The notes beneath the pieces were generated by a model. The model saw only the letters and a program-made list of their open reading frames with translations. It did not search any database and was not told where the DNA came from. Shown here in pieces: positions 1 through 9,841 of a DNA stretch of 9,841 bases. The position numbers and the translations under genes are program-made. Position 1 is the first letter of the stretch. Every line of letters begins with the position of its first letter. The DNA lies in contig CDRNVI010000246.1 of NCBI GenBank assembly GCA_977017575.1, forward strand, positions 1 through 9,841, read 5' to 3'. The stretch is from Paramoeba atlantica (taxonomy: Eukaryota; Protista; Discosea).

Positions 1-475
1 CGTTGCTATCCCTATATGTATGTAAAATATCATACATAAGAATCAATAAGATCTATTTCGTCTCCTCTTTCATCCTTTTAACATAGCAAGACTAATCTAT
101 ATTATATAATTATTATTCAACTTTTTTAATTATATTTTATCTGCTTGAACACCATAGTTCGATAAAAAATAAATAAAAAGATGAATAAATAACTAAAAAA
201 TAAAGATAGACAAGAACAAGAATAGTTTAGTTTAATTCCGTGTTAAATCCTCAATCCTTAAGTCGGATTTGTCACTCCATATACGATCAAACTTTATTTA
301 CTTAAATTTTTACAAAGATAGTAAAATTAAAAGTATAAAGATGATCTAGCTCACCAGTTTTATTTAAATTAAAATCTTACACAATGATTTTATATTTATA
401 AACTACTCGCTTCCATCGACCCTCGACTTTGTTGAAGTTTAAGTTTTTGAGTTTACGATATTAAAGAGAAAAAAA

Positions 476-621
476 ATATTATTGCGCTCTATTGGTGGGG
501 CTTTCGTTAAATTATTAAAAGCTCAACGTCATTGTTCGCGTTTTACGTTACACTCCACAAGCTAAACAAGTGCGTTCTGCCTTAATAATCACTACCCCTC
601 ACCAAAAGGTCGCAATAATAT
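476..621 (+). other. Long imperfect stem-loop / multibranch domain (also at 5085-5230; partial in copy 3)
   Basis: atattattgcg 476-486 pairs with cgcaataatat 611-621. ttggtgggg 492-500 pairs with cctcaccaa 597-605 (one G.U on +). attattaa 511-518 pairs with ttaataat 582-589. aacgt 525-529 pairs with acgtt 545-549. Confidence 0.6.
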
Positions 622-789
622 ATGTTTTTAGCGTTTAAGATCTGGAGACCATTTTCAAAATAGAAAATGTCAATCGCTTTTTTCTTACGCAAGTACGTCA
701 AAAAAATCGTTTTTCTCCATGAGCTAAAACGAGTTAGTTCGATCGGGCTTTTTTTGATGCTTTTTTTGGATCGCAGCTTCAACAAAAAA

Positions 790-1910
790 AAATTTCCGCT
801 GCTGTTTTCCAACAAAGAAAATTATAAAAAAATAATTTTGTTGTTGTCAAATACGATCTTTTAAAATATAAAATTTTTTTTATCGTTATAAATTTTATTC
901 CGACATAAATTTGTTGGAAAAGTAACAGTAAAAAGTTGTTAATGAAAAAAAAATAAATTCATTAACAACAACGTTGATGAAAAATAACAATCAACGCTGT
1001 TAAATTTCCAACAAAATAATGTCAGAAAAAAATTTCTGCCGAAATAATTTAGCTGATTAAATTTTTATCACGACAAAAATATTTTTTTGTTGATCAATTA
1101 AATCGTTATTAACAAAAAAGTTATAACGCTGTTAATTTTCCAACATAAAAATTTTTTATCTCTCAAAAAATATTTTTTGATGTTCAAAGTTATCGTTTGA
1201 TAACAAAAAAGTTATAACGCTGTAACTTTTCCAACAAAAAAAATTTTTTTTCGTGTTAAAAATTATTTTTGATCAATAAAAATTATTTTCGATGTTCAAA
1301 TTCATCGTTTGATAACAAAAAAGTTATAACGCTGTTAATTTTCCATCAAAAATTATTTTTTTTGCTTCAAAAATTTTTTTTAACATAAAAATTTATAATG
1401 ATGATTACAAAATAAGTGTTGCAACTCAAAAAAGTTGTTTAACACTGTTAATTTTCCATCAACATCATAATTTTTATTTAAAAATTTTAATCAAAATCAA
1501 TTTTATAAACATTTTTTGTAAAAAAATTAAAATTTTTACTGGAAAATTACGGTGAGATGCATAAAAATTAGATTTAAACATAAATTTATGCAAACTACCG
1601 TTTAATTTCCAACAAAATTTAAATTTTTTTCATTCAAAAATAGATTTTTTTAATTTTTCGCCGACAAAATTGAAAAAAAATTGAATTTTCATTCAAAAAG
1701 TTGTAAAATTGAGTCTCAGGATGAAAAAGTGGAAAAAGACCACATTTTATCAATTCGACGCTAAATTAGCAAAAAATTTCAATTTCTACACCTAAATGAC
1801 TGTAGAAATTGGTGTTTTCCTACAATTTTGTGGAAACTCCTGACAAACACTGCTAAATTTCCAACAAAAAGTCAATTTGCAGGTGCTGCCCGTGGATTTT
1901 CCAACAAAAT
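790..1910 (+). repeat. Degenerate subrepeat ladder built on (aac)gctgtt..ttcca(a/t)caaaa (also ~5400-6517)
   Basis: Exact 22-mer aacaaaaaagttataacgctgt at 1111, 1202 and 1314 (periods 91 and 112), with a degenerate copy near 1427. ttcca(a/t)ca motif near 807, 1006, 1138, 1229, 1341, 1454, 1607, 1859 and 1899, plus one inverted copy (ttgttggaa) at ~911. Confidence 0.85.
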
Positions 1911-1919
1911 ACTAGCAAA

Positions 1920-2545
1920 ACTACTCAAAATGCTATTTTTCCGGCAGAAAACCGTCAAAATCTGCTTTTTCTGGGCAGGAATGACAAAAACGGCCCAAAA
2001 AAGGCCCTGTCATTTTGCCCAAAAACGCAGTATTTTTTCCTGTTCTGGCCTGCAAATTAGCGGATGTCCAAGTGCCCCAAAAAAAGTGACTTGGACTCCG
2101 AGCCGACTCGAAAAGTCGTATTTTCCGGCAGAAACGAAAAAATATGCCACATTTTGTCCGACGATTATTTACAACTTTTTCTCGCATCCCATCATAGCGA
2201 TTTTGCGGATCTGCAAGTTGGGAGGGAACCAACTGCATTTTTTGGCCGTTTTGAACCCGTTTTGTAAAAAATCGCATATATAAACTCCATAATTTCCCCT
2301 CAGAAATCTGCCACTTTTGGACGCCAAAAAGTGTTTTGCAGAATCTCGAGGGCAAAATAGGAGTTTTTTGACCCGATTTTGTGAACAAAACTGGCATCAA
2401 AAACTATTCCAAATGCTCCAATCCGAATTTCAGCTATTGAACACTAAAAATGCTGAAAATCGCTATTTCGCACTGGAATTCCGCCAAAACTCCTTTTCAA
2501 TGCGTATTTTGGGCGAGAAAATCGTGAATTTTATAATTTTTAAAC
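1920..2545. other. Phased An/Tn tracts with ~10-bp period in a GC-richer island (PATC-like / bent DNA); also ~6527-7152
   Basis: A/T runs start at 1927, 1936, 1948, 1957, 1966, 1986 and 1997, and at 2446, 2456, 2466, 2477, 2486, 2494, 2507, 2518, 2527 and 2536, separated by G/C-rich spacers. Confidence 0.7.
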
Positions 2546-2829
2546 TTTTTTTTGTATAATTTATCATTTTTAGCGCGGATTTGTATAATTTCTCGCATAA
2601 TTTATTAGTTTTATAGCGTTGTAGTTAAAATTTTCATAATTTTATCATCAAAGTCATCATTTTTCTATAATTTCAAACAAAATTATTAAAAAAAATGTTG
2701 TCTCAGACGAAAAAATTGCATGAAAGTTGTTAAACAACACTAAAACTAAAAAAATATCCCGCAGAAATTAAAAAACCGTGATAAAAATTTATAAATTCAA
2801 AAGAAAAATTTAAAAATCTTAAAAATTTA

Positions 2830-2873
2830 TGATGAAATCATCTTCTTTGTACCAAAATCAGATGTAAACATCA
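2830..2873 (-). repeat. Truncated inverted copy of module-A core forming a mini-hairpin (also 7437-7480)
   Basis: Shares atcttctttgt(a/t)ccaaaatcagatgt with the inverted modules at ~3262-3287 and ~7876-7901. Closed by tgatg/catca. Confidence 0.75.
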
Positions 2874-3219
2874 AAAAATTTTTTTAAAATCACTAGTTGA
2901 AACCATCGTCTATGGTTTCTTTTGTTAATGATCAATGTTTTCATTTCATTCATAACATTTTCACGTTAACTTCGTTCAACTAACTTGAATTTTATTAAAA
3001 TTATGATTCATAAAATAATTTTTTCATTGCTAAAAATAAAACCGCAATGGAAATTATTATGAAACAAGTTTTAATAATTCAAACTTAAGTTTGAACTCGA
3101 GTTATAAAATTTTAATAACATTAATATATACTTTTAAATAACTTCTATAATTAATTCAAAAGAGAATTTATAATTAAGAACTTATAAAACTATATTTAAT
3201 GATTTAAAACTTAATAACT

Positions 3220-3327
3220 TGTTGTAATGTTTTCAATATAATAATATATTTACGATATATTATCTTCTTTGTTCCAAAATCAGATGTTGATTATCGTACA
3301 TTCTTATTACATGAAAACATAACAACA
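3220..3327 (-). ncRNA. Module A, inverted copy (putative structured hairpin; strand uncertain)
   Basis: 3275-3320 is the reverse complement of the module-A 5' arm. Stems: tgttgt/acaaca, atgttttca/tgaaaacat, taataa/ttatta, tacgata/tatcgta. Confidence 0.5.
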
Positions 3328-3463
3328 TAAAGAATACAATAGGCACTCCTTACATTTAAATGCCCTTAATATAATTTATCGATATATTTAATTACACAAA
3401 TAATTTAAAATATAATTTATAAAATATTAATAAAGTTCATGTAAAATGTAAGAAGTTACCCTA

Positions 3464-3609
3464 GTTTTCCTGGTATTGTGAGTATGTTTTCATGTAATAA
3501 ACATGTACGATAATCAACATCTGATTTTGACTCAAAGCAGAGTAATCATCGTTAAATATCGTTACAAAGTTATTACAAATAAAACATAAATCACTAATAA
3601 CAGGAAAAT
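3464..3609 (+). ncRNA. Module A hairpin, direct copy 1 (putative structured RNA)
   Basis: Core atgtacgataatcaacatctgatttt. Basal stems: ttttcctg/caggaaaa, gtga/tcac, tatgtttt/aaaacata, tgtaataa/ttattaca. Confidence 0.55.
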
Positions 3610-3820
3610 ATTAAATACAAAAATATTTAATAAACTTCGATGCAAAAAAGCATCTTGACAATCTCTGTGTTTTTGTTAAAAAAAATAGCGTAAAACTACA
3701 AAACCATATATATAAAATGAAAAGTGTATAAAAAAGAAAAGCATACACTTTGATACATTCAATCGAAAAATATCTCAATCATGTATCATTAATTTTAGTA
3801 TATATGGTAGGAGTTTTACC

Positions 3821-3960
3821 TTTACAGTGCTATTAGTCATGTTTTCATGTAATAAGAATGTACGATAATCAACATCTGATTTGCACTCAAAGTAGAGTAA
3901 TCATCGTTAAATATCAGTACAAAGTCATTACAAGAAAACTAAAGATTAAAGCACTGTAAA
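3821..3960 (+). ncRNA. Module A hairpin, direct copy 2 (putative structured RNA)
   Basis: Same core with one substitution. Basal stems: tttacagtgct/agcactgtaaa, ttagtc/gattaa (G.U), gttttc/gaaaac, tgtaat/attaca. Confidence 0.55.
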
Positions 3961-3961
3961 A

Positions 3962-3996
3962 TTGCACTAAGATTTCCTTCAGAAATTCAAGTGCAA
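3962..3996 (+). other. Module D hairpin (7-bp outer stem, AAG/TCA internal loop, atttc/gaaat inner stem)
   Basis: ttgcact-aag-atttc-cttca-gaaat-tca-agtgcaa. Siblings at 4074-4106, 8222-8254, 8257-8291, 8585-8617, 8620-8654 and 8728-8762 have covarying stems. Confidence 0.75.
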
Positions 3997-4073
3997 ATAT
4001 CCGCCCAACTTATAAAATATAAGTGGCGTCTATATATATTTTTTTATCGAAAAAAACGATAAATAAATAAAGA

Positions 4074-4106
4074 TCATGATAAGATTTCTACGAAATTCAA
4101 TCATGA
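4074..4106 (+). other. Module D hairpin
   Basis: tcatgat-aag-atttc-tac-gaaat-tca-atcatga. Confidence 0.75.
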
Positions 4107-4107
4107 A

Positions 4108-4127
4108 GCATACACTATAGTGTATGC
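4108..4127. repeat. Perfect 20-bp palindrome gcatacactatagtgtatgc (also 8764-8783)
   Basis: Self-reverse-complementary and identical in both copies. Confidence 0.95.
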
Positions 4128-4246
4128 AAATTATTACAAAAATAATAATTTTAAAATTTTTTCTTCGAAATTCAAAGAAGAATTTATTCGAAAAAAATAT
4201 AAATTTTAATGTTTTCGTGTTTAACTACAACTTAAATTTATATATA

Positions 4247-4700
4247 TTTCGTTAAATTAAGAGAATAATTAAACGAAACTGTTACTCGGCAAAAATAAGG
4301 GAATTTTTGAGTAACAGACCGTTCAAATTGAAAACAAAAAAACAATTTGCACGGCAATTCTTGGGGTTTTTACGCCTCACGGCTTCGTGATTGGACTAAA
4401 GAGCAGGAGCGAGAGCAAGAAAGTTTGCAGGGGTAGTTGAGTTAGCTATTCCCGGTGGAAGCTAACCTCGATTCTTTAGTCTTTAGTTGTGGTAATTTGG
4501 GATAGTGAAGTAAAATTTTTAAAGTTCACTATCGACAATTACTATTCTCTTTCATCTTTTGGCGTGCATTGCTAATTGATCCCAATAGACAATCACATTC
4601 AGAAATGATCGTTGCTATCCCTATATGTATGTAAAATATCATACATAAGAATCAATAAGATCTATTTCGTCTCCTCTTTCATCCTTTTAACATAGCAAGA
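4247..4700 (+). ncRNA. Putative structured ncRNA domain with compensatory substitutions between copies (equivalent 8903-9355); family unassigned
   Basis: Stems at 4247-4278, 4279-4317, 4319-4354, 4361-68/4578-85, 4371-76/4561-66, 4377-90, 4394-4402/4473-81, 4439-69, 4490-4544 and 4624-47. T4506-A4528 becomes C9162-G9184; G4492-C4542 becomes A9148-T9198. Confidence 0.6.
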
Positions 4701-7700
4701 CTAATCTATATTATATAATTATTATTCAACTTTTTTAATTATATTTTATCTGCTTGAACACCATAGTTCGATAAAAAATAAATAAAAAGATGAATAAATA
4801 ACTAAAAAATAAAGATAGACAAGAACAAGAATAGTTTAGTTTAATTCCGTGTTAAATCCTCAATCCTTAAGTCGGATTTGTCACTCCATATACGATCAAA
4901 CTTTATTTACTTAAATTTTTACAAAGATAGTAAAATTAAAAGTATAAAGATGATCTAGCTCACCAGTTTTATTTAAATTAAAATCTTACACAATGATTTT
5001 ATATTTATAAACTACTCGCTTCCATCGACCCTCGACTTTGTTGAAGTTTAAGTTTTTGAGTTTACGATATTAAAGAGAAAAAAAATATTATTGCGCTCTA
5101 TTGGTGGGGCTTTCGTTAAATTATTAAAAGCTCAACGTCATTGTTCGCGTTTTACGTTACACTCCACAAGCTAAACAAGTGCGTTCTGCCTTAATAATCA
5201 CTACCCCTCACCAAAAGGTCGCAATAATATATGTTTTTAGCGTTTAAGATCTGGAGACCATTTTCAAAATAGAAAATGTCAATCGCTTTTTTCTTACGCA
5301 AGTACGTCAAAAAAATCGTTTTTCTCCATGAGCTAAAACGAGTTAGTTCGATCGGGTGTTTTTTGATGCTTTTTTTGGATCGCAGCTTCAACAAAAAAAA
5401 ATTTCCACTGCTGTTTTCCAACAAAGAAAATTATAAAAAAATAATTTTGTTGTTGTCAAATACGATCTTTTAAAATATAAAATTTTTTTTATCGTTATAA
5501 ATTTTATTCCAACATAAATTTGTTGGAAAAGTAACAGTAAAAAGTTGTTAATGAAAAAAAATAAATTCATTAACAACAACGTTGATGAAAAATAACAATC
5601 AACGCTGTTAAATTTCCAACAAAATAATGTCAGAAAAAAATTTCTGCCGAAATAATTTAGCTGATTAAATTTTTATCACGACAAAAATATTTTTTTGTTG
5701 ATCAATTAAATCGTTATTAACAAAAAAGTTATAACGCTGTTAATTTTCCAACATAAAAATTTTTTATCTCTCAAAAAATATTTTTTGATGTTCAAAGTTA
5801 TCGTTTGATAACAAAAAAGTTATAACGCTGTAACTTTTCCAACAAAAAAATTTTTTTTCGTGTTAAAAATTATTTTTGATCAATAAAAATTATTTTCGAT
5901 GTTCAAATTCATCGTTTGATAACAAAAAAGTTATAACGCTGTTAATTTTCCATCAAAAATTATTTTTTTTGCTTCAAAAATTTTTTTTAACATAAAAATT
6001 TATGATGATGATTACAAAACCAGTGTTGCAACTCAAAAAAGTTGTTTAACACTGTGAATTTTCCATCAACATCATAATTTTTATTTAAAAATTTTAATCA
6101 AAATCAATTTTATAAACATTTTTTGTAAAAAAATTAAAATTTTTACTGGAAAATTACGGTGAGATGCATAAAAATTAGATTTAAACATAAATTTATGCAA
6201 ACTACCGTTTAATTTCCAACAAAATTTAAATTTTTTTCATTCAAAAATAGATTTTTTTAATTTTTCGCTGACAAAATTGAAAAAAAATTGAATTTTCATT
6301 CAAAAAGTTGTAAAATTGAGTCTCAGGATGAAAAAGTGGAAAAAGACCACATTTTATCAATTCGACGCTAAATTAGCAAAAAATTTCAATTTCTACACCT
6401 AAATGACTGTAGAAATTGGTGTTTTCCTACAATTTTGTGGAAATCCCTGACAAACACTGCTAAATTTCCAACAAAAAGTCAATTTGCAGGTGCTGCCCGT
6501 GGATTTTCCAACAAAATACTAGCAAAACTACTCAAAATGCTATTTTTCCGGCAGAAAACCGTCAAAATCTGCTTTTTCTGGGCAGGAATGACAAAAACGG
6601 CCCAAAAAAGGCCCTGTCATTTTGCCCAAAAACGCAGTATTTTTTCCTGTTCTGGCCTGCAAATTAGCGGATGTCCAAGTGCCCCAAAAAAAGTGACTTG
6701 CACTCCGAGCCGACTCGAAAAGTCGTATTTTCCGGCAGAAACGAAAAAATATGCCACATTTTGTCCGACGATTATTTACAACTTTTTCTCGCATCCCATC
6801 ATAGCGATTTTGCGGATCTGCAGGTTGGGAGGGAGCCAACTGCATTTTTTGGCCGTTTTGAACCCGTTTTGTAAAAAATCGCATATATAAACTCCTTAAT
6901 TTCCCCTCAGAAATCTGCCACTTTTGGAGACCAAAAAGTGTTTTGCAGAATCTAAAGTGGAAAATAGGAGTTTTTTGACCCGATTTTGTGAACAAAACTG
7001 GCATCAAAAACTATTCCAAATGCTCCAATCCGAATTTCAGCTATTGAACACTAAAAATGCTGAAAATCGCTATTTCGCACTGGAATTCCGCCAAAACTCC
7101 TTTTCAATGCGTATTTTGGGCGAGAAAACCGTCGATTTTATAATTTTTAAACTTTTTTTTGTATAATTTATCATTTTTAGCGCGGATTTCTATAATTTCT
7201 CGCATAATTTATTAGTTTTATAGCGTTGTAGTTAAAATTTTCATAATTTTATCATCAAAGTCATCATTTTTCTATAATTTCAAACAAAATTATTAAAAAA
7301 AATGTTGTCTCAGACGAAAAAATTGCATGAAAGTTGTTAAACAACACTAAAACTAAAAAAATATCCCGCAGAAATTAAAAAACCGTGATAAAAATTTATA
7401 AATTCAAAAGAAAAATTTAAAAATCTTAAAAATTTATGATGAAATCATCTTCTTTGTACCAAAATCAGATGTAAACATCAAAAAATTTTTTTAAAATCAC
7501 TAGTTGAAACCATCGTCTATGGTTTCTTTTGTTAATGATCAATGTTTTCATTTCATTCATAACATTTTCACGTTAACTTCGTTCAACTAACTTGAATTTT
7601 ATTAAAATTATGATTCATAAAATAATTTTTTCATTGCTAAAAATAGAATCGCAATGGAAATTATTATGAAACAAGTTTTAATAATTCAAACTTAAGTTTG

Positions 7701-7823
7701 AACTCGAGTTATAAAATTTTATAAATTTAAATTATAATTTCAATCATTTCTATAATTAATTCAATAGAGAATTTATAATTATGAAACTATGAAACTATAT
7801 TTAATGATTTAAAATTTAATAAT

Positions 7824-7953
7824 CCCTGTATGTGTTCTTTATGTTTTCAATGTCTGATGATATGTTCGATATATCATCTTCTTTGTACCAAAATCAGATG
7901 TTGATTATCGTACATTCTTATTACATGAAAACAAAAAAGAACATACAACAGGG
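7824..7953 (-). ncRNA. Module A, inverted copy in unit 2 (strand uncertain)
   Basis: 7889-7932 is the exact reverse complement of 8097-8140. Basal stems ccctgt/acaggg, tgttcttt/aaagaaca and tgttttca/tgaaaaca; the outer two differ from unit 1. Confidence 0.5.
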
Positions 7954-8077
7954 AAATACTAAGATACTTTAATAACTATTATGTATATAAATTGATCGAA
8001 TATATAATTACAAAAATAATTTAAAATATTCAATAATATTAAATATATATAGTTATTAAAGTGATCTTGTATCCTAG

Positions 8078-8220
8078 TTCATGTCGATTCTTTTAGGTTT
8101 TCATGTAATAAGAATGTACGATAATCAACATCTGATTTTGACTCAAAGTAGAGTAATCATCGTTAAATATCAGTACAAAACTTATTACAAAGAAAACAAC
8201 TAATAAAGCATCGACATGAA
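8078..8220 (+). ncRNA. Module A hairpin, direct copy 1 in unit 2
   Basis: Same core. Basal stem ttcatgtcgat/atcgacatgaa (11 bp perfect), plus gttttc/gaaaac, tgtaataag/cttattaca and tgtac/gtaca. Confidence 0.55.
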
Positions 8221-8221
8221 A

Positions 8222-8291
8222 TTCTGCTAAGATTTCTACGAAATTCAAGCAGAAAATTACACTAAGATTTCCTATAGAAATTCAAGTGTAA
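8222..8291 (+). other. Two tandem module D hairpins (8222-8254, 8257-8291)
   Basis: Outer stems ttctgct/agcagaa and ttacact/agtgtaa. The AAG/TCA loop and atttc/gaaat inner stem are retained. Confidence 0.75.
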
Positions 8292-8440
8292 ACAAACATT
8301 AGTATTGCAAAAACAATCTATGTTTGTATTAAAAAAAACACATCTAGAACAATATAATATAAATCAATAAAAATATTTAATTACAAAAATAATATAAAAT
8401 ATAATTTATAAATTTATTATTAAAATGATCTAGATGAACA

Positions 8441-8583
8441 TATTCCTGGGTATTCTAATGTGGTTTTCATGTAATAAACATGTACGATAATCAACATCTG
8501 ATTTTGACTCAAAGTAGAGTAATCATCGTTAAATATCGTATAAAGTTTATTAATAATAAAACCACAAAGGAATCCAAGGAATA
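8441..8583 (+). ncRNA. Module A hairpin, direct copy 2 in unit 2
   Basis: Same core. Basal stems tattcct/aggaata, attc/gaat, tgtggtttt/aaaaccaca, taataaac/gtttatta and tgtacgata/tatcgtata (G.U). Confidence 0.55.
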
Positions 8584-8584
8584 A

Positions 8585-8654
8585 TTATGCTAAGATTTAT
8601 ACTAAATTCAAGCATAAGATTGCACTAAGATTTCCTTCAGAAATTCAAGTGCAA
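8585..8654 (+). other. Two tandem module D hairpins (8585-8617, 8620-8654)
   Basis: ttatgct-aag-attta-tac-taaat-tca-agcataa (inner C-G replaced by A-T) and ttgcact...agtgcaa. Confidence 0.75.
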
Positions 8655-8727
8655 ATATCCGCTCAACTTATAAAATATAAGTGGCGTCTATATATTTAAT
8701 CATTACAAAAATAATGAATTAAATAGA

Positions 8728-8762
8728 TCATGATAAGATTTTTTACAAAAATTCAATCATGA
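8728..8762 (+). other. Module D hairpin
   Basis: tcatgat-aag-attttt-tac-aaaaat-tca-atcatga. The inner stem is changed on both arms relative to 4074-4106. Confidence 0.7.
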
Positions 8763-9265
8763 AGCATACACTATAGTGTATGCAAATTATTACAAAAATA
8801 ATAATTTTAAAATTTTTTCTTCGAAATTCAAAGAAGAATTTATTCGAAAAAAATATAAATTTTAATGTTTACGTGTTTAACTACAACTTAAATTTATATA
8901 TATTTCGTTAAATTAAGAGAATAATTAAACGAAACTGTTACTCGGCAAAAATAAGGGAATTTTTGAGTAACAGACCGTTCAAATTGAAAACAAAAAAACA
9001 ATTTGCACGGCAATTCTTGGGGTTTTTACGCCTCACGGCTTCGTGATTGGACTAAAGAGCAGGAGCGAGAGCAAGAAAGTTTGCAGGGGTAGTTGAGTTA
9101 GCTATTCCCGGTGGTAGCTAACCTCGATTCCTTAGTCTTTAGTTGTGATAATTTGGGATAGCGAAGTAAAATTTTTAAAGTTCGCTATCGACAATTATTG
9201 TTCTCTTTCATCTTTTGGCGTGCATTGCTAATTGATCCCAATAGACAATCACATTCAGAAATGAT

Positions 9266-9841
9266 CGTTGCTATCCCTATATGTATGTAAAATATCATAC
9301 ATAAGAATCAATAAGATCTATTTCGTCTCCTCTTTTTTCTTTTAAAATAGCAGGACTAATCTATATTATATAGTTATTATTCAACTTTTTTAATTATATT
9401 TTATCTGCTTGAACACCATAGTTCGATAAAAAATAAATAAAAAGATGAATAAATAACTAAAAAATAAAGATAGACAAGAACAAGAATAGTTTAGTTTAAT
9501 TCCGTGTTAAATCCTCAATCCTTAAGTCGGATTTGTCACTCCATATACGATCAAACTTTATTTACTTAAATTTTTACAAAGATAGTAAAATTAAAAGTAT
9601 AAAGATGATCTAGCTCACCAGTTTTATTTAAATTAAAATCTTACACAATGATTTTATATTTATAAACTACTCGCTTCCATCGACCCTCGACTTTGTTGAA
9701 GTTTGAGTGTTTGAGTTTACGATATTAAAGAGAAAAAAAATATTATTGCGCTCTATTGGTGGGGCTTTCGTTAAATTATTAAAAGCTCAACGTCATTGTT
9801 CGCGTTTTACGTTACACTCCACAAGCTAAACAAGTGCGTTC
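9266..9841. repeat. Tandem repeat unit, copy 3 (partial, runs off window)
   Basis: Matches 1..577 with a net 1-bp deletion and a few substitutions (e.g. 9331-9355, 9704-9710). Confidence 0.97.

Follow-up and report, generated by a model that had tools for sequence, protein, structure and literature searches.

A stem-loop family with an invariant internal loop and covarying outer stems in the hypervariable hairpin cassette of a 4.6-kb AT-rich repeat

Integron attC sites and the light-strand origin of vertebrate mtDNA are recognised as folded single strands, by their pairing and their unpaired bases, and their stem sequence is free. Among RNA hairpins, the IRE, the histone 3′ stem-loop and the phage coat-protein operators are ~30 nt long and carry a conserved unpaired feature between helices, with stems that covary. 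Hairpin repeat modules in high-copy, AT-rich DNA are already known as well: in Volvox carteri mtDNA and ptDNA, short palindromic AT-rich repeats of 11–77 nt with 3–5 nt loops fill the non-coding DNA (PMC2670323). The guide RNA (gRNA) cassettes of Trypanosoma brucei minicircles are framed by 18-bp inverted repeats into modules of ~110 nt (PMC9202587), and diplonemid mitochondrial chromosomes combine a large constant region with a small unique cassette containing gene fragments (PMC3035467). Template switching in replication can make and repair stems in a single event, without any RNA selection (PMC8794818).

The DNA analysed here, a stretch of 9,841 nt from a Paramoeba atlantica assembly (the window), holds 2.1 copies of a 4.6-kb AT-rich unit, at 1–4609 and 4610–9264 with a partial third copy following. 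This tandem layout is uncertain, as a short contig could chain different circles through their common constant region. Outside a cassette of ~1 kb, identity between the two full units is 97% or more in most 100-nt windows, and the constant part makes up 3.6 kb of each 4.6-kb unit. The cassettes are placed as follows:

3100–4085, strand not applicable: hypervariable cassette of unit 1; between-unit window identity 39–85%; tiled by hairpins
7708–8740, strand not applicable: hypervariable cassette of unit 2; between-unit window identity 39–85%

A search of the window for tRNA and tmRNA returned none, and its open reading frames are short and of low complexity only, with zero Pfam matches; compared with Pfam, none of them encodes a recombinase or Rep protein. 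Word depths in one public run suggest that the unit is very abundant and its copy number very high: unit-specific pieces reach ~10,000–15,000, values with no single-copy baseline for scaling, and constant-region pieces stand at 25,000 each, an apparent ceiling, with a sum above 500,000. Across 7700–9270 the depths in that run cluster at multiples of 25,000 (25,000; 75,000; 50,027; 200,282), which resembles a per-contig ceiling, so the true copy number is understated. A total of 782 unitigs could be placed on 1.6 kb of window sequence, implying many cassette variants, in the hundreds. Parts of the unit are also present in public runs labelled with eleven other organisms, which suggests that its source is a widespread contaminant, associate or parasite, visible through its high-copy DNA.

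Folded with a 160-nt span limit, the two cassettes reach −265 and −303 kcal/mol, against −141 and −148 kcal/mol for shuffles, and form wall-to-wall hairpins with linkers of 0–3 nt and 66–71% of their bases paired. The subject of this study is a family of seven short hairpins, termed D, all of which sit in the 3′ end of the cassette, near the point where between-unit identity returns (bits are scores from the covariance model described below):

3962–3996, + strand: D hairpin, 35 nt, long-loop; outer stem TTGCACT/AGTGCAA, loop CTTCA; 56.1 bits; 1 nt after the A hairpin at 3821–3960 and 0 nt before hairpin C
4074–4106, + strand: D hairpin, 33 nt, short-loop; outer stem TCATGAT/ATCATGA, loop TAC; 51.3 bits; palindrome B 1 nt on
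8222–8254, + strand: D hairpin, 33 nt; outer stem TTCTGCT/AGCAGAA, loop TAC; 51.9 bits; 1 nt after the A hairpin at 8078–8220
8257–8291, + strand: D hairpin, 35 nt; outer stem TTACACT/AGTGTAA, loop CTATA; 55 bits; 2 nt after the D hairpin at 8222–8254
8585–8617, + strand: D hairpin, 33 nt; outer stem TTATGCT/AGCATAA; innermost pair A–T, not C–G; 1 nt after the A hairpin at 8441–8583
8620–8654, + strand: D hairpin, 35 nt; same sequence as the copy at 3962–3996; abuts hairpin C
8728–8762, + strand: D hairpin, 35 nt; outer stem TCATGAT/ATCATGA; inner helix one pair longer (T–A)

The initial annotation had placed the family at 3962–4106, an interval that contains the first two copies; the remaining five belong to the repeat unit that follows. 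The core AAGATTT-N(3–12)-AAATTCA occurs seven times in the window, always on the + strand, where shuffles lead one to expect 0.04 occurrences. The fold of every copy comprises a 7-bp outer helix, a 2×2 AA/CA internal loop closed by G.U, and an A/U-rich inner helix of 5–6 bp that is capped by an apical loop of 3 nt (TAC) or 5 nt. RNA folding of all seven gives −7.3 to −11.5 kcal/mol (z −2.8 to −4.5), and DNA parameters give −5.0 to −7.8 kcal/mol for four of the copies. The earlier description of seven 33–35 nt hairpins with a fixed AAG/TCA loop, read on the + strand as a 2×2 loop with a G.U closure, is borne out: all copies are on the + strand, the loop never changes, and every copy folds as drawn.

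The D alignment contains six distinct sequences with five distinct outer stems, all from one array. Every one of the 13 base pairs is Watson–Crick or the fixed G.U in every copy, so that 100% of pair cells are paired; six pairs have changed on both sides, none on one side only, and none is broken. None of 500 shuffles reached the covariation score of the alignment, and shifting the pairing partners abolishes the signal. The strong covariation, the five perfectly paired 7-bp outer stem sequences and the replacement of the innermost C–G pair by A–T (8585) and T–A (8728), all claimed in the initial annotation, hold across the seven copies. A covariance model, also proposed there, was built and separates the D copies at 51–56 bits from all else, the best other match scoring 17.5 bits. 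The core also turns up by chance in metagenome and viral contigs, and 144 such cases served as an outside control: flanks paired at 6/6 positions were seen in none of them, as against 7/7 copies in the window.

One further relative of D is found in each constant region:

4146–4181, + strand: degenerate D-like copy within the constant region; AAG replaced by AAA, loop longer; 16 bits
8802–8837, + strand: second degenerate D-like copy in the constant region, identical to that at 4146–4181

The outer stem of this relative is paired at 5/7 positions and is unchanged in both units. Further instances with unpaired outer stems had been named beforehand as evidence against the motif; the degenerate copy touches on that case without being a clean example of it.

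The modules around D have an ordered layout, with four large hairpins, termed A, and two further elements, C and B:

3464–3610, + strand: large A hairpin, ~140 nt; no D after it
3821–3960, + strand: large A hairpin; ~77-nt near-invariant 5′ arm and apex, exchanged basal stem; then D
8078–8220, + strand: large A hairpin, ~140 nt; D 1 nt on
8441–8583, + strand: large A hairpin, ~140 nt; D 1 nt on
3997–4035 and 8655–8693, + strand: hairpin C, directly 3′ of a long-loop D
4108–4127 and 8764–8783, strand not applicable: palindrome B, perfect over 20 bp, 1 nt 3′ of the last D

In three of the four cases an A hairpin is followed by a single A residue and then a D hairpin, neighbouring D hairpins are 2 nt apart, and the next C or B module begins 0–1 nt after D, the long-loop D abutting C and the last D standing 1 nt from B. 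The orientation is single for 7/7 D copies and for 4/4 direct A copies. In other samples the long-loop D comes after A, in some cases directly and in others together with the short-loop D; the joints fall at module borders, and whole modules thus come and go. Inverted partial copies of A occur at 3227–3322, 7841–7936, 2840–2865 and 7447–7472, and a TG/GC dimorphism in the A apical bulge (8139–8140) is common in the population. The arm of palindrome B, GCATACACT, is shared with the 3′ arm of another cassette hairpin (3723–3751); to judge by such shared sequence, arms seem to have been copied between hairpins, as template switching would do.

The constant region has repeated features of its own. 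A motif close to CTGTTAATTTTCCAACAAAA is present in 9–11 copies per unit, at 780–1940 and 5390–6550, all on the + strand and ~40–250 nt apart, and several copies have a small hairpin just before them; it looks like a repeated protein-binding or initiation/termination signal of the constant region. The stretches 4300–4600 and 8960–9260, at ~40% G+C, are the sole ones with positive GC skew (+0.17 to +0.24). They carry the purine-rich run GAGCAGGAGCGAGAGCAAGAAAG together with long-range stems, and start ~200 nt 3′ of the last D.

D matches no described RNA family and no searched public contig collection. A cmscan against Rfam 15 (E ≤ 1, both strands) gave no match overlapping D and only three sub-threshold miRNA matches elsewhere:

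1956–2036, − strand: sub-threshold miRNA match
6563–6643, − strand: sub-threshold miRNA match
7833–7943: sub-threshold miRNA match

The first two are the same kind of feature, a long, G+C-richer hairpin that scores 26 bits for mir-2007 against a gathering score of 100, and the match most likely reflects hairpin shape only. The initial annotation was correct that D does not fit the SECIS, IRE and histone stem-loop consensus, none of which Rfam finds over D, nor the K-turn, which needs a 3-nt bulge and tandem sheared G.A/A.G pairs: the D internal loop has A.A and A.C closed by G.U and no G.A pair. A hairpin like an intrinsic terminator is rejected on composition and context, since D has a G+C content of 20–34% and is followed by an A-rich linker or the next hairpin, with no T run. 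Exact matches to the invariant 24-nt A core and to a 27-nt G-rich constant segment were absent from metagenome, GTDB genome and viral contigs, and the D core alone gave only single chance matches with unpaired flanks in metagenome and viral contigs. None of the papers searched prints these sequences.

The distribution of changes within D is uneven. Counting base pairs and unpaired bases as units, 0/9 units vary in the core and 5/7 in the outer helix (P=0.005), and the core is unchanged over 16 nt while outer stems differ at up to 5/7 positions. The paralogous blocks 8220–8292 and 8583–8655, each with two D hairpins, are 88% identical with nine differing sites, six of which make up three restored pairs and three of which are in a loop or linker, leaving none in the bubble, as we call the AA/CA internal loop; restored pairing to this extent has a chance P of ~5e-6. 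In other samples the D hairpin at 8728–8762 is short of a single T (8744) and a single A (8748), both on the same contigs, and their joint absence makes the inner helix one pair shorter and yields the standard 33-nt geometry. No further difference was listed inside any D hairpin in the other samples, though neighbouring modules vary.

Several features bear on which nucleic acid is folded, and on which strand. G.U makes up 2.7–3.1% of pairs in + strand cassette helices, compared with 9% in shuffles, no wobble intermediate is seen in the D stems of the seven-copy alignment, and the folding z-scores of the two cassette strands are similar. G.U is a little more frequent on the − strand, but only because that strand is richer in G and T, so the G.U counts do not pick a strand. 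On the + strand, 52–56% of unpaired bases and 61–66% of hairpin-loop bases are A, and paired bases show no A/T bias; by their A-rich loops, the strands are not equivalent. For D itself the + strand, where G.U stacks against the inner helix, folds with slightly greater stability than the − strand. A site for a dimeric protein in double-stranded DNA would not need its variable positions to covary. The sole RNA-labelled public run yielded no transcript of the region, and this tiny run is too small for absence to be read from it. The initial annotation had proposed an RNA motif making protein or tertiary contacts. That reading is partly supported, in that the + strand loop is invariant and the core more conserved than the stems; its RNA nature and protein binding are putative.

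Our leading explanation, which we hold tentatively, sees D as a stem-loop made of a clamp and a bubble, active in a single strand that is folded; this would most likely be + strand RNA and possibly displaced single-stranded DNA, and D would have a role at module boundaries. The recognised part would be the invariant, asymmetric AA/CA bubble with its G.U pair and the A/U-rich inner helix, while the 7-bp outer helix would need only to pair. We infer that D folds in vivo and that a factor reads the bubble. D would then serve as a boundary element of fixed geometry directly 3′ of the large A hairpins in a high-copy non-coding repeat, a role suggested by its position after them, and may mark or protect module ends as a processing site, a 3′-end stop or a factor-binding site. 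Templated DNA events probably supply the compensated variants, among which selection would keep those that are paired and that preserve the bubble and the geometry. We counted in favour of a folded + strand the full pairing, the core constraint, the paralog differences, the paired indel, the fixed spacing and orientation and the A-rich loops. Against it we counted the near-absence of G.U, the similar folding of the two strands, the transversion pairs, the availability of six sequences only, the lack of any transcript in the tiny RNA-labelled run, and the unchanged survival, in the constant region, of a degenerate copy whose outer stem pairs imperfectly.

It is possible, if on balance rather unlikely, that D has no function and consists of DNA-level palindromic repeats turning over in a hairpin-prone, AT-rich cassette. 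Template switching or arm-to-arm repair would keep the stems perfect, and the common core would reflect recent descent or nested copying into the loops of older hairpins. The cassette as a whole is tiled by near-perfect Watson–Crick inverted repeats on both strands, and its other hairpins behave as D does: the A hairpins have a looser 3′ arm and basal stems of ~20 bp that are wholly different in each copy yet paired, and three of the four have upstream an AT-rich hairpin of ~100 nt (3340–3463, 7956–8072, 8341–8436), both kinds following the same rule of a constant apex or interior above a basal stem that differs but pairs. For such a pattern nesting is simpler than point-by-point compensation. 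Covariation of the A hairpins could be counted by RNAalifold for their conserved part only, since no alignment of the basal stems is possible. Two of the three compensated changes between the young paralogs are C–G to A–T transversion pairs, and in blocks that are 88% identical these fit one-step DNA-templated events, template switching being documented to create or repair stems in one event (PMC8794818); organelle genomes do fill with nesting AT-rich palindromes of 11–77 nt with 3–5 nt loops (PMC2670323). Several features speak against functionless turnover. The bubble is intact in 7/7 copies although both flanking helices have been remodelled, and a single arm-copying event that fixed both helices of a hairpin would have erased it. 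The unchanged 16-nt core beside outer stems that differ at up to 5/7 positions, the one orientation and the fixed linkers beside A in all D copies, the strand-specific bias towards A in loops, and the paired indel that restores one fixed geometry likewise speak against it.

A more specific proposal, which we regard as improbable, is that the 4.6-kb unit is a novel kinetoplast DNA whose cassette is transcribed as a hairpin precursor and cut into small RNAs, with D as the end signal. Recognised by a protein behind each large A hairpin, D would signal an end or a processing site; where trypanosomes define guide RNA ends through antisense duplexes, the task would here fall to a hairpin in cis. By analogy, the AT-richness, the abundance and the division into constant part and cassette may be said to resemble gRNA-encoding kinetoplast DNA and diplonemid chromosomes (PMC9202587, PMC3035467). 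The minicircle CSB-3 dodecamer GGGGTTGGTGTA is absent from the window with up to three mismatches allowed, the cassette has no guide-like complementarity to the rest of the window beyond the partial inverted A copy, and papers on Trypanoplasma, Perkinsela and prokinetoplastid kDNA report no unit of this kind.

A role for D in recombination or replication, as a site recognised in folded single-stranded DNA like attC or a light-strand origin, is in our view quite improbable; such a site could drive the shuffling of modules. Stems made of Watson–Crick pairs only suit DNA hairpins, and four D copies are stable with DNA parameters; the hypervariable block has D at its 3′ edge, and the cassettes of other samples differ by whole modules with joints at module borders, but plain homologous recombination between repeats would give the same joints. 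The window encodes no recombinase or Rep protein, and an integron attC-like site is rejected because the R-box (RYYYAAC/GTTRRRY) is absent from D and no open reading frame has a Pfam match. The loops are too small for a priming site of the light-strand-origin type, and there are several D copies per unit rather than one. Lastly, AT-rich DNA does contain many weak inverted repeats, and a short contig may chain units across a constant region, but the notion that the seven hairpins are a product of chance or an assembly artefact can be dismissed, chance being ruled out by seven finds where 0.04 are expected, by the lack of paired flanks in all 144 control cores and by the 34-bit gap to the next covariance-model match. 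These sequences also recur in independent public runs whose labels name several organisms.

Should the hairpins have a function, D is a compact, undescribed recognition motif in which an invariant asymmetric bubble is held by a clamp of free sequence; as the motif is repeated thousands of times in what is apparently one of the organism's most abundant DNAs, finding its factor and processing pathway should prove easy. If the unit proves to be kinetoplast DNA, it would represent a new architecture with a testable model of how small RNAs are delimited. If instead the hairpins are only products of templated DNA events, they are a natural case of apparent covariation without RNA function, a known trap for the statistics of structure prediction.

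Compared with RNA hairpins that bind proteins, such as the IRE, D has no Rfam match and no K-turn G.A pairs and is not in an mRNA; compared with attC and the light-strand origin, it lacks the R-box, an integrase and a T-rich priming loop, and is present in several copies per unit. T. brucei minicircles are likewise AT-rich DNA with a conserved and a variable part, framing inverted repeats and an A-rich sense strand, and they are highly abundant, as word depth suggests for the unit; but there constant framing repeats enclose variable contents, whereas here the framing stems vary around a constant inside, and a 4.6-kb unit with a 3.6-kb constant part has no CSB-3 dodecamer. With diplonemid chromosomes the locus shares near-identical units of a few kb, a short distinguishing cassette, tandem subrepeats in the constant part and an apparently very high copy number; unlike them, its cassettes consist of hairpins only, with no open reading frame or Pfam match, and its units appear in tandem in the window rather than as single circles. 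Template-switch mutations can account for the perfect Watson–Crick stems and for one-step, multi-base compensated changes, but they are a mutational mechanism and not an element, and alone they leave unexplained a never-repaired bubble between remodelled helices (PMC8794818). In form D resembles the palindromic repeats of organelles, in Volvox carteri and sponge mitochondria, which are also AT-rich hairpins with 3–5 nt loops, nested or abutting, in high-copy DNA, and the cassette answers to their description of AT-rich hairpins of 11–77 nt filling non-coding DNA. In those families, however, the stems are the conserved part, whereas D has five different outer stems that covary, with only the bubble and inner helix in common, and its orientation and neighbours are fixed. 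The invariant asymmetric bubble, the freely covarying clamp stems and the fixed module grammar are what make D unusual among the hairpin repeats of AT-rich DNA.
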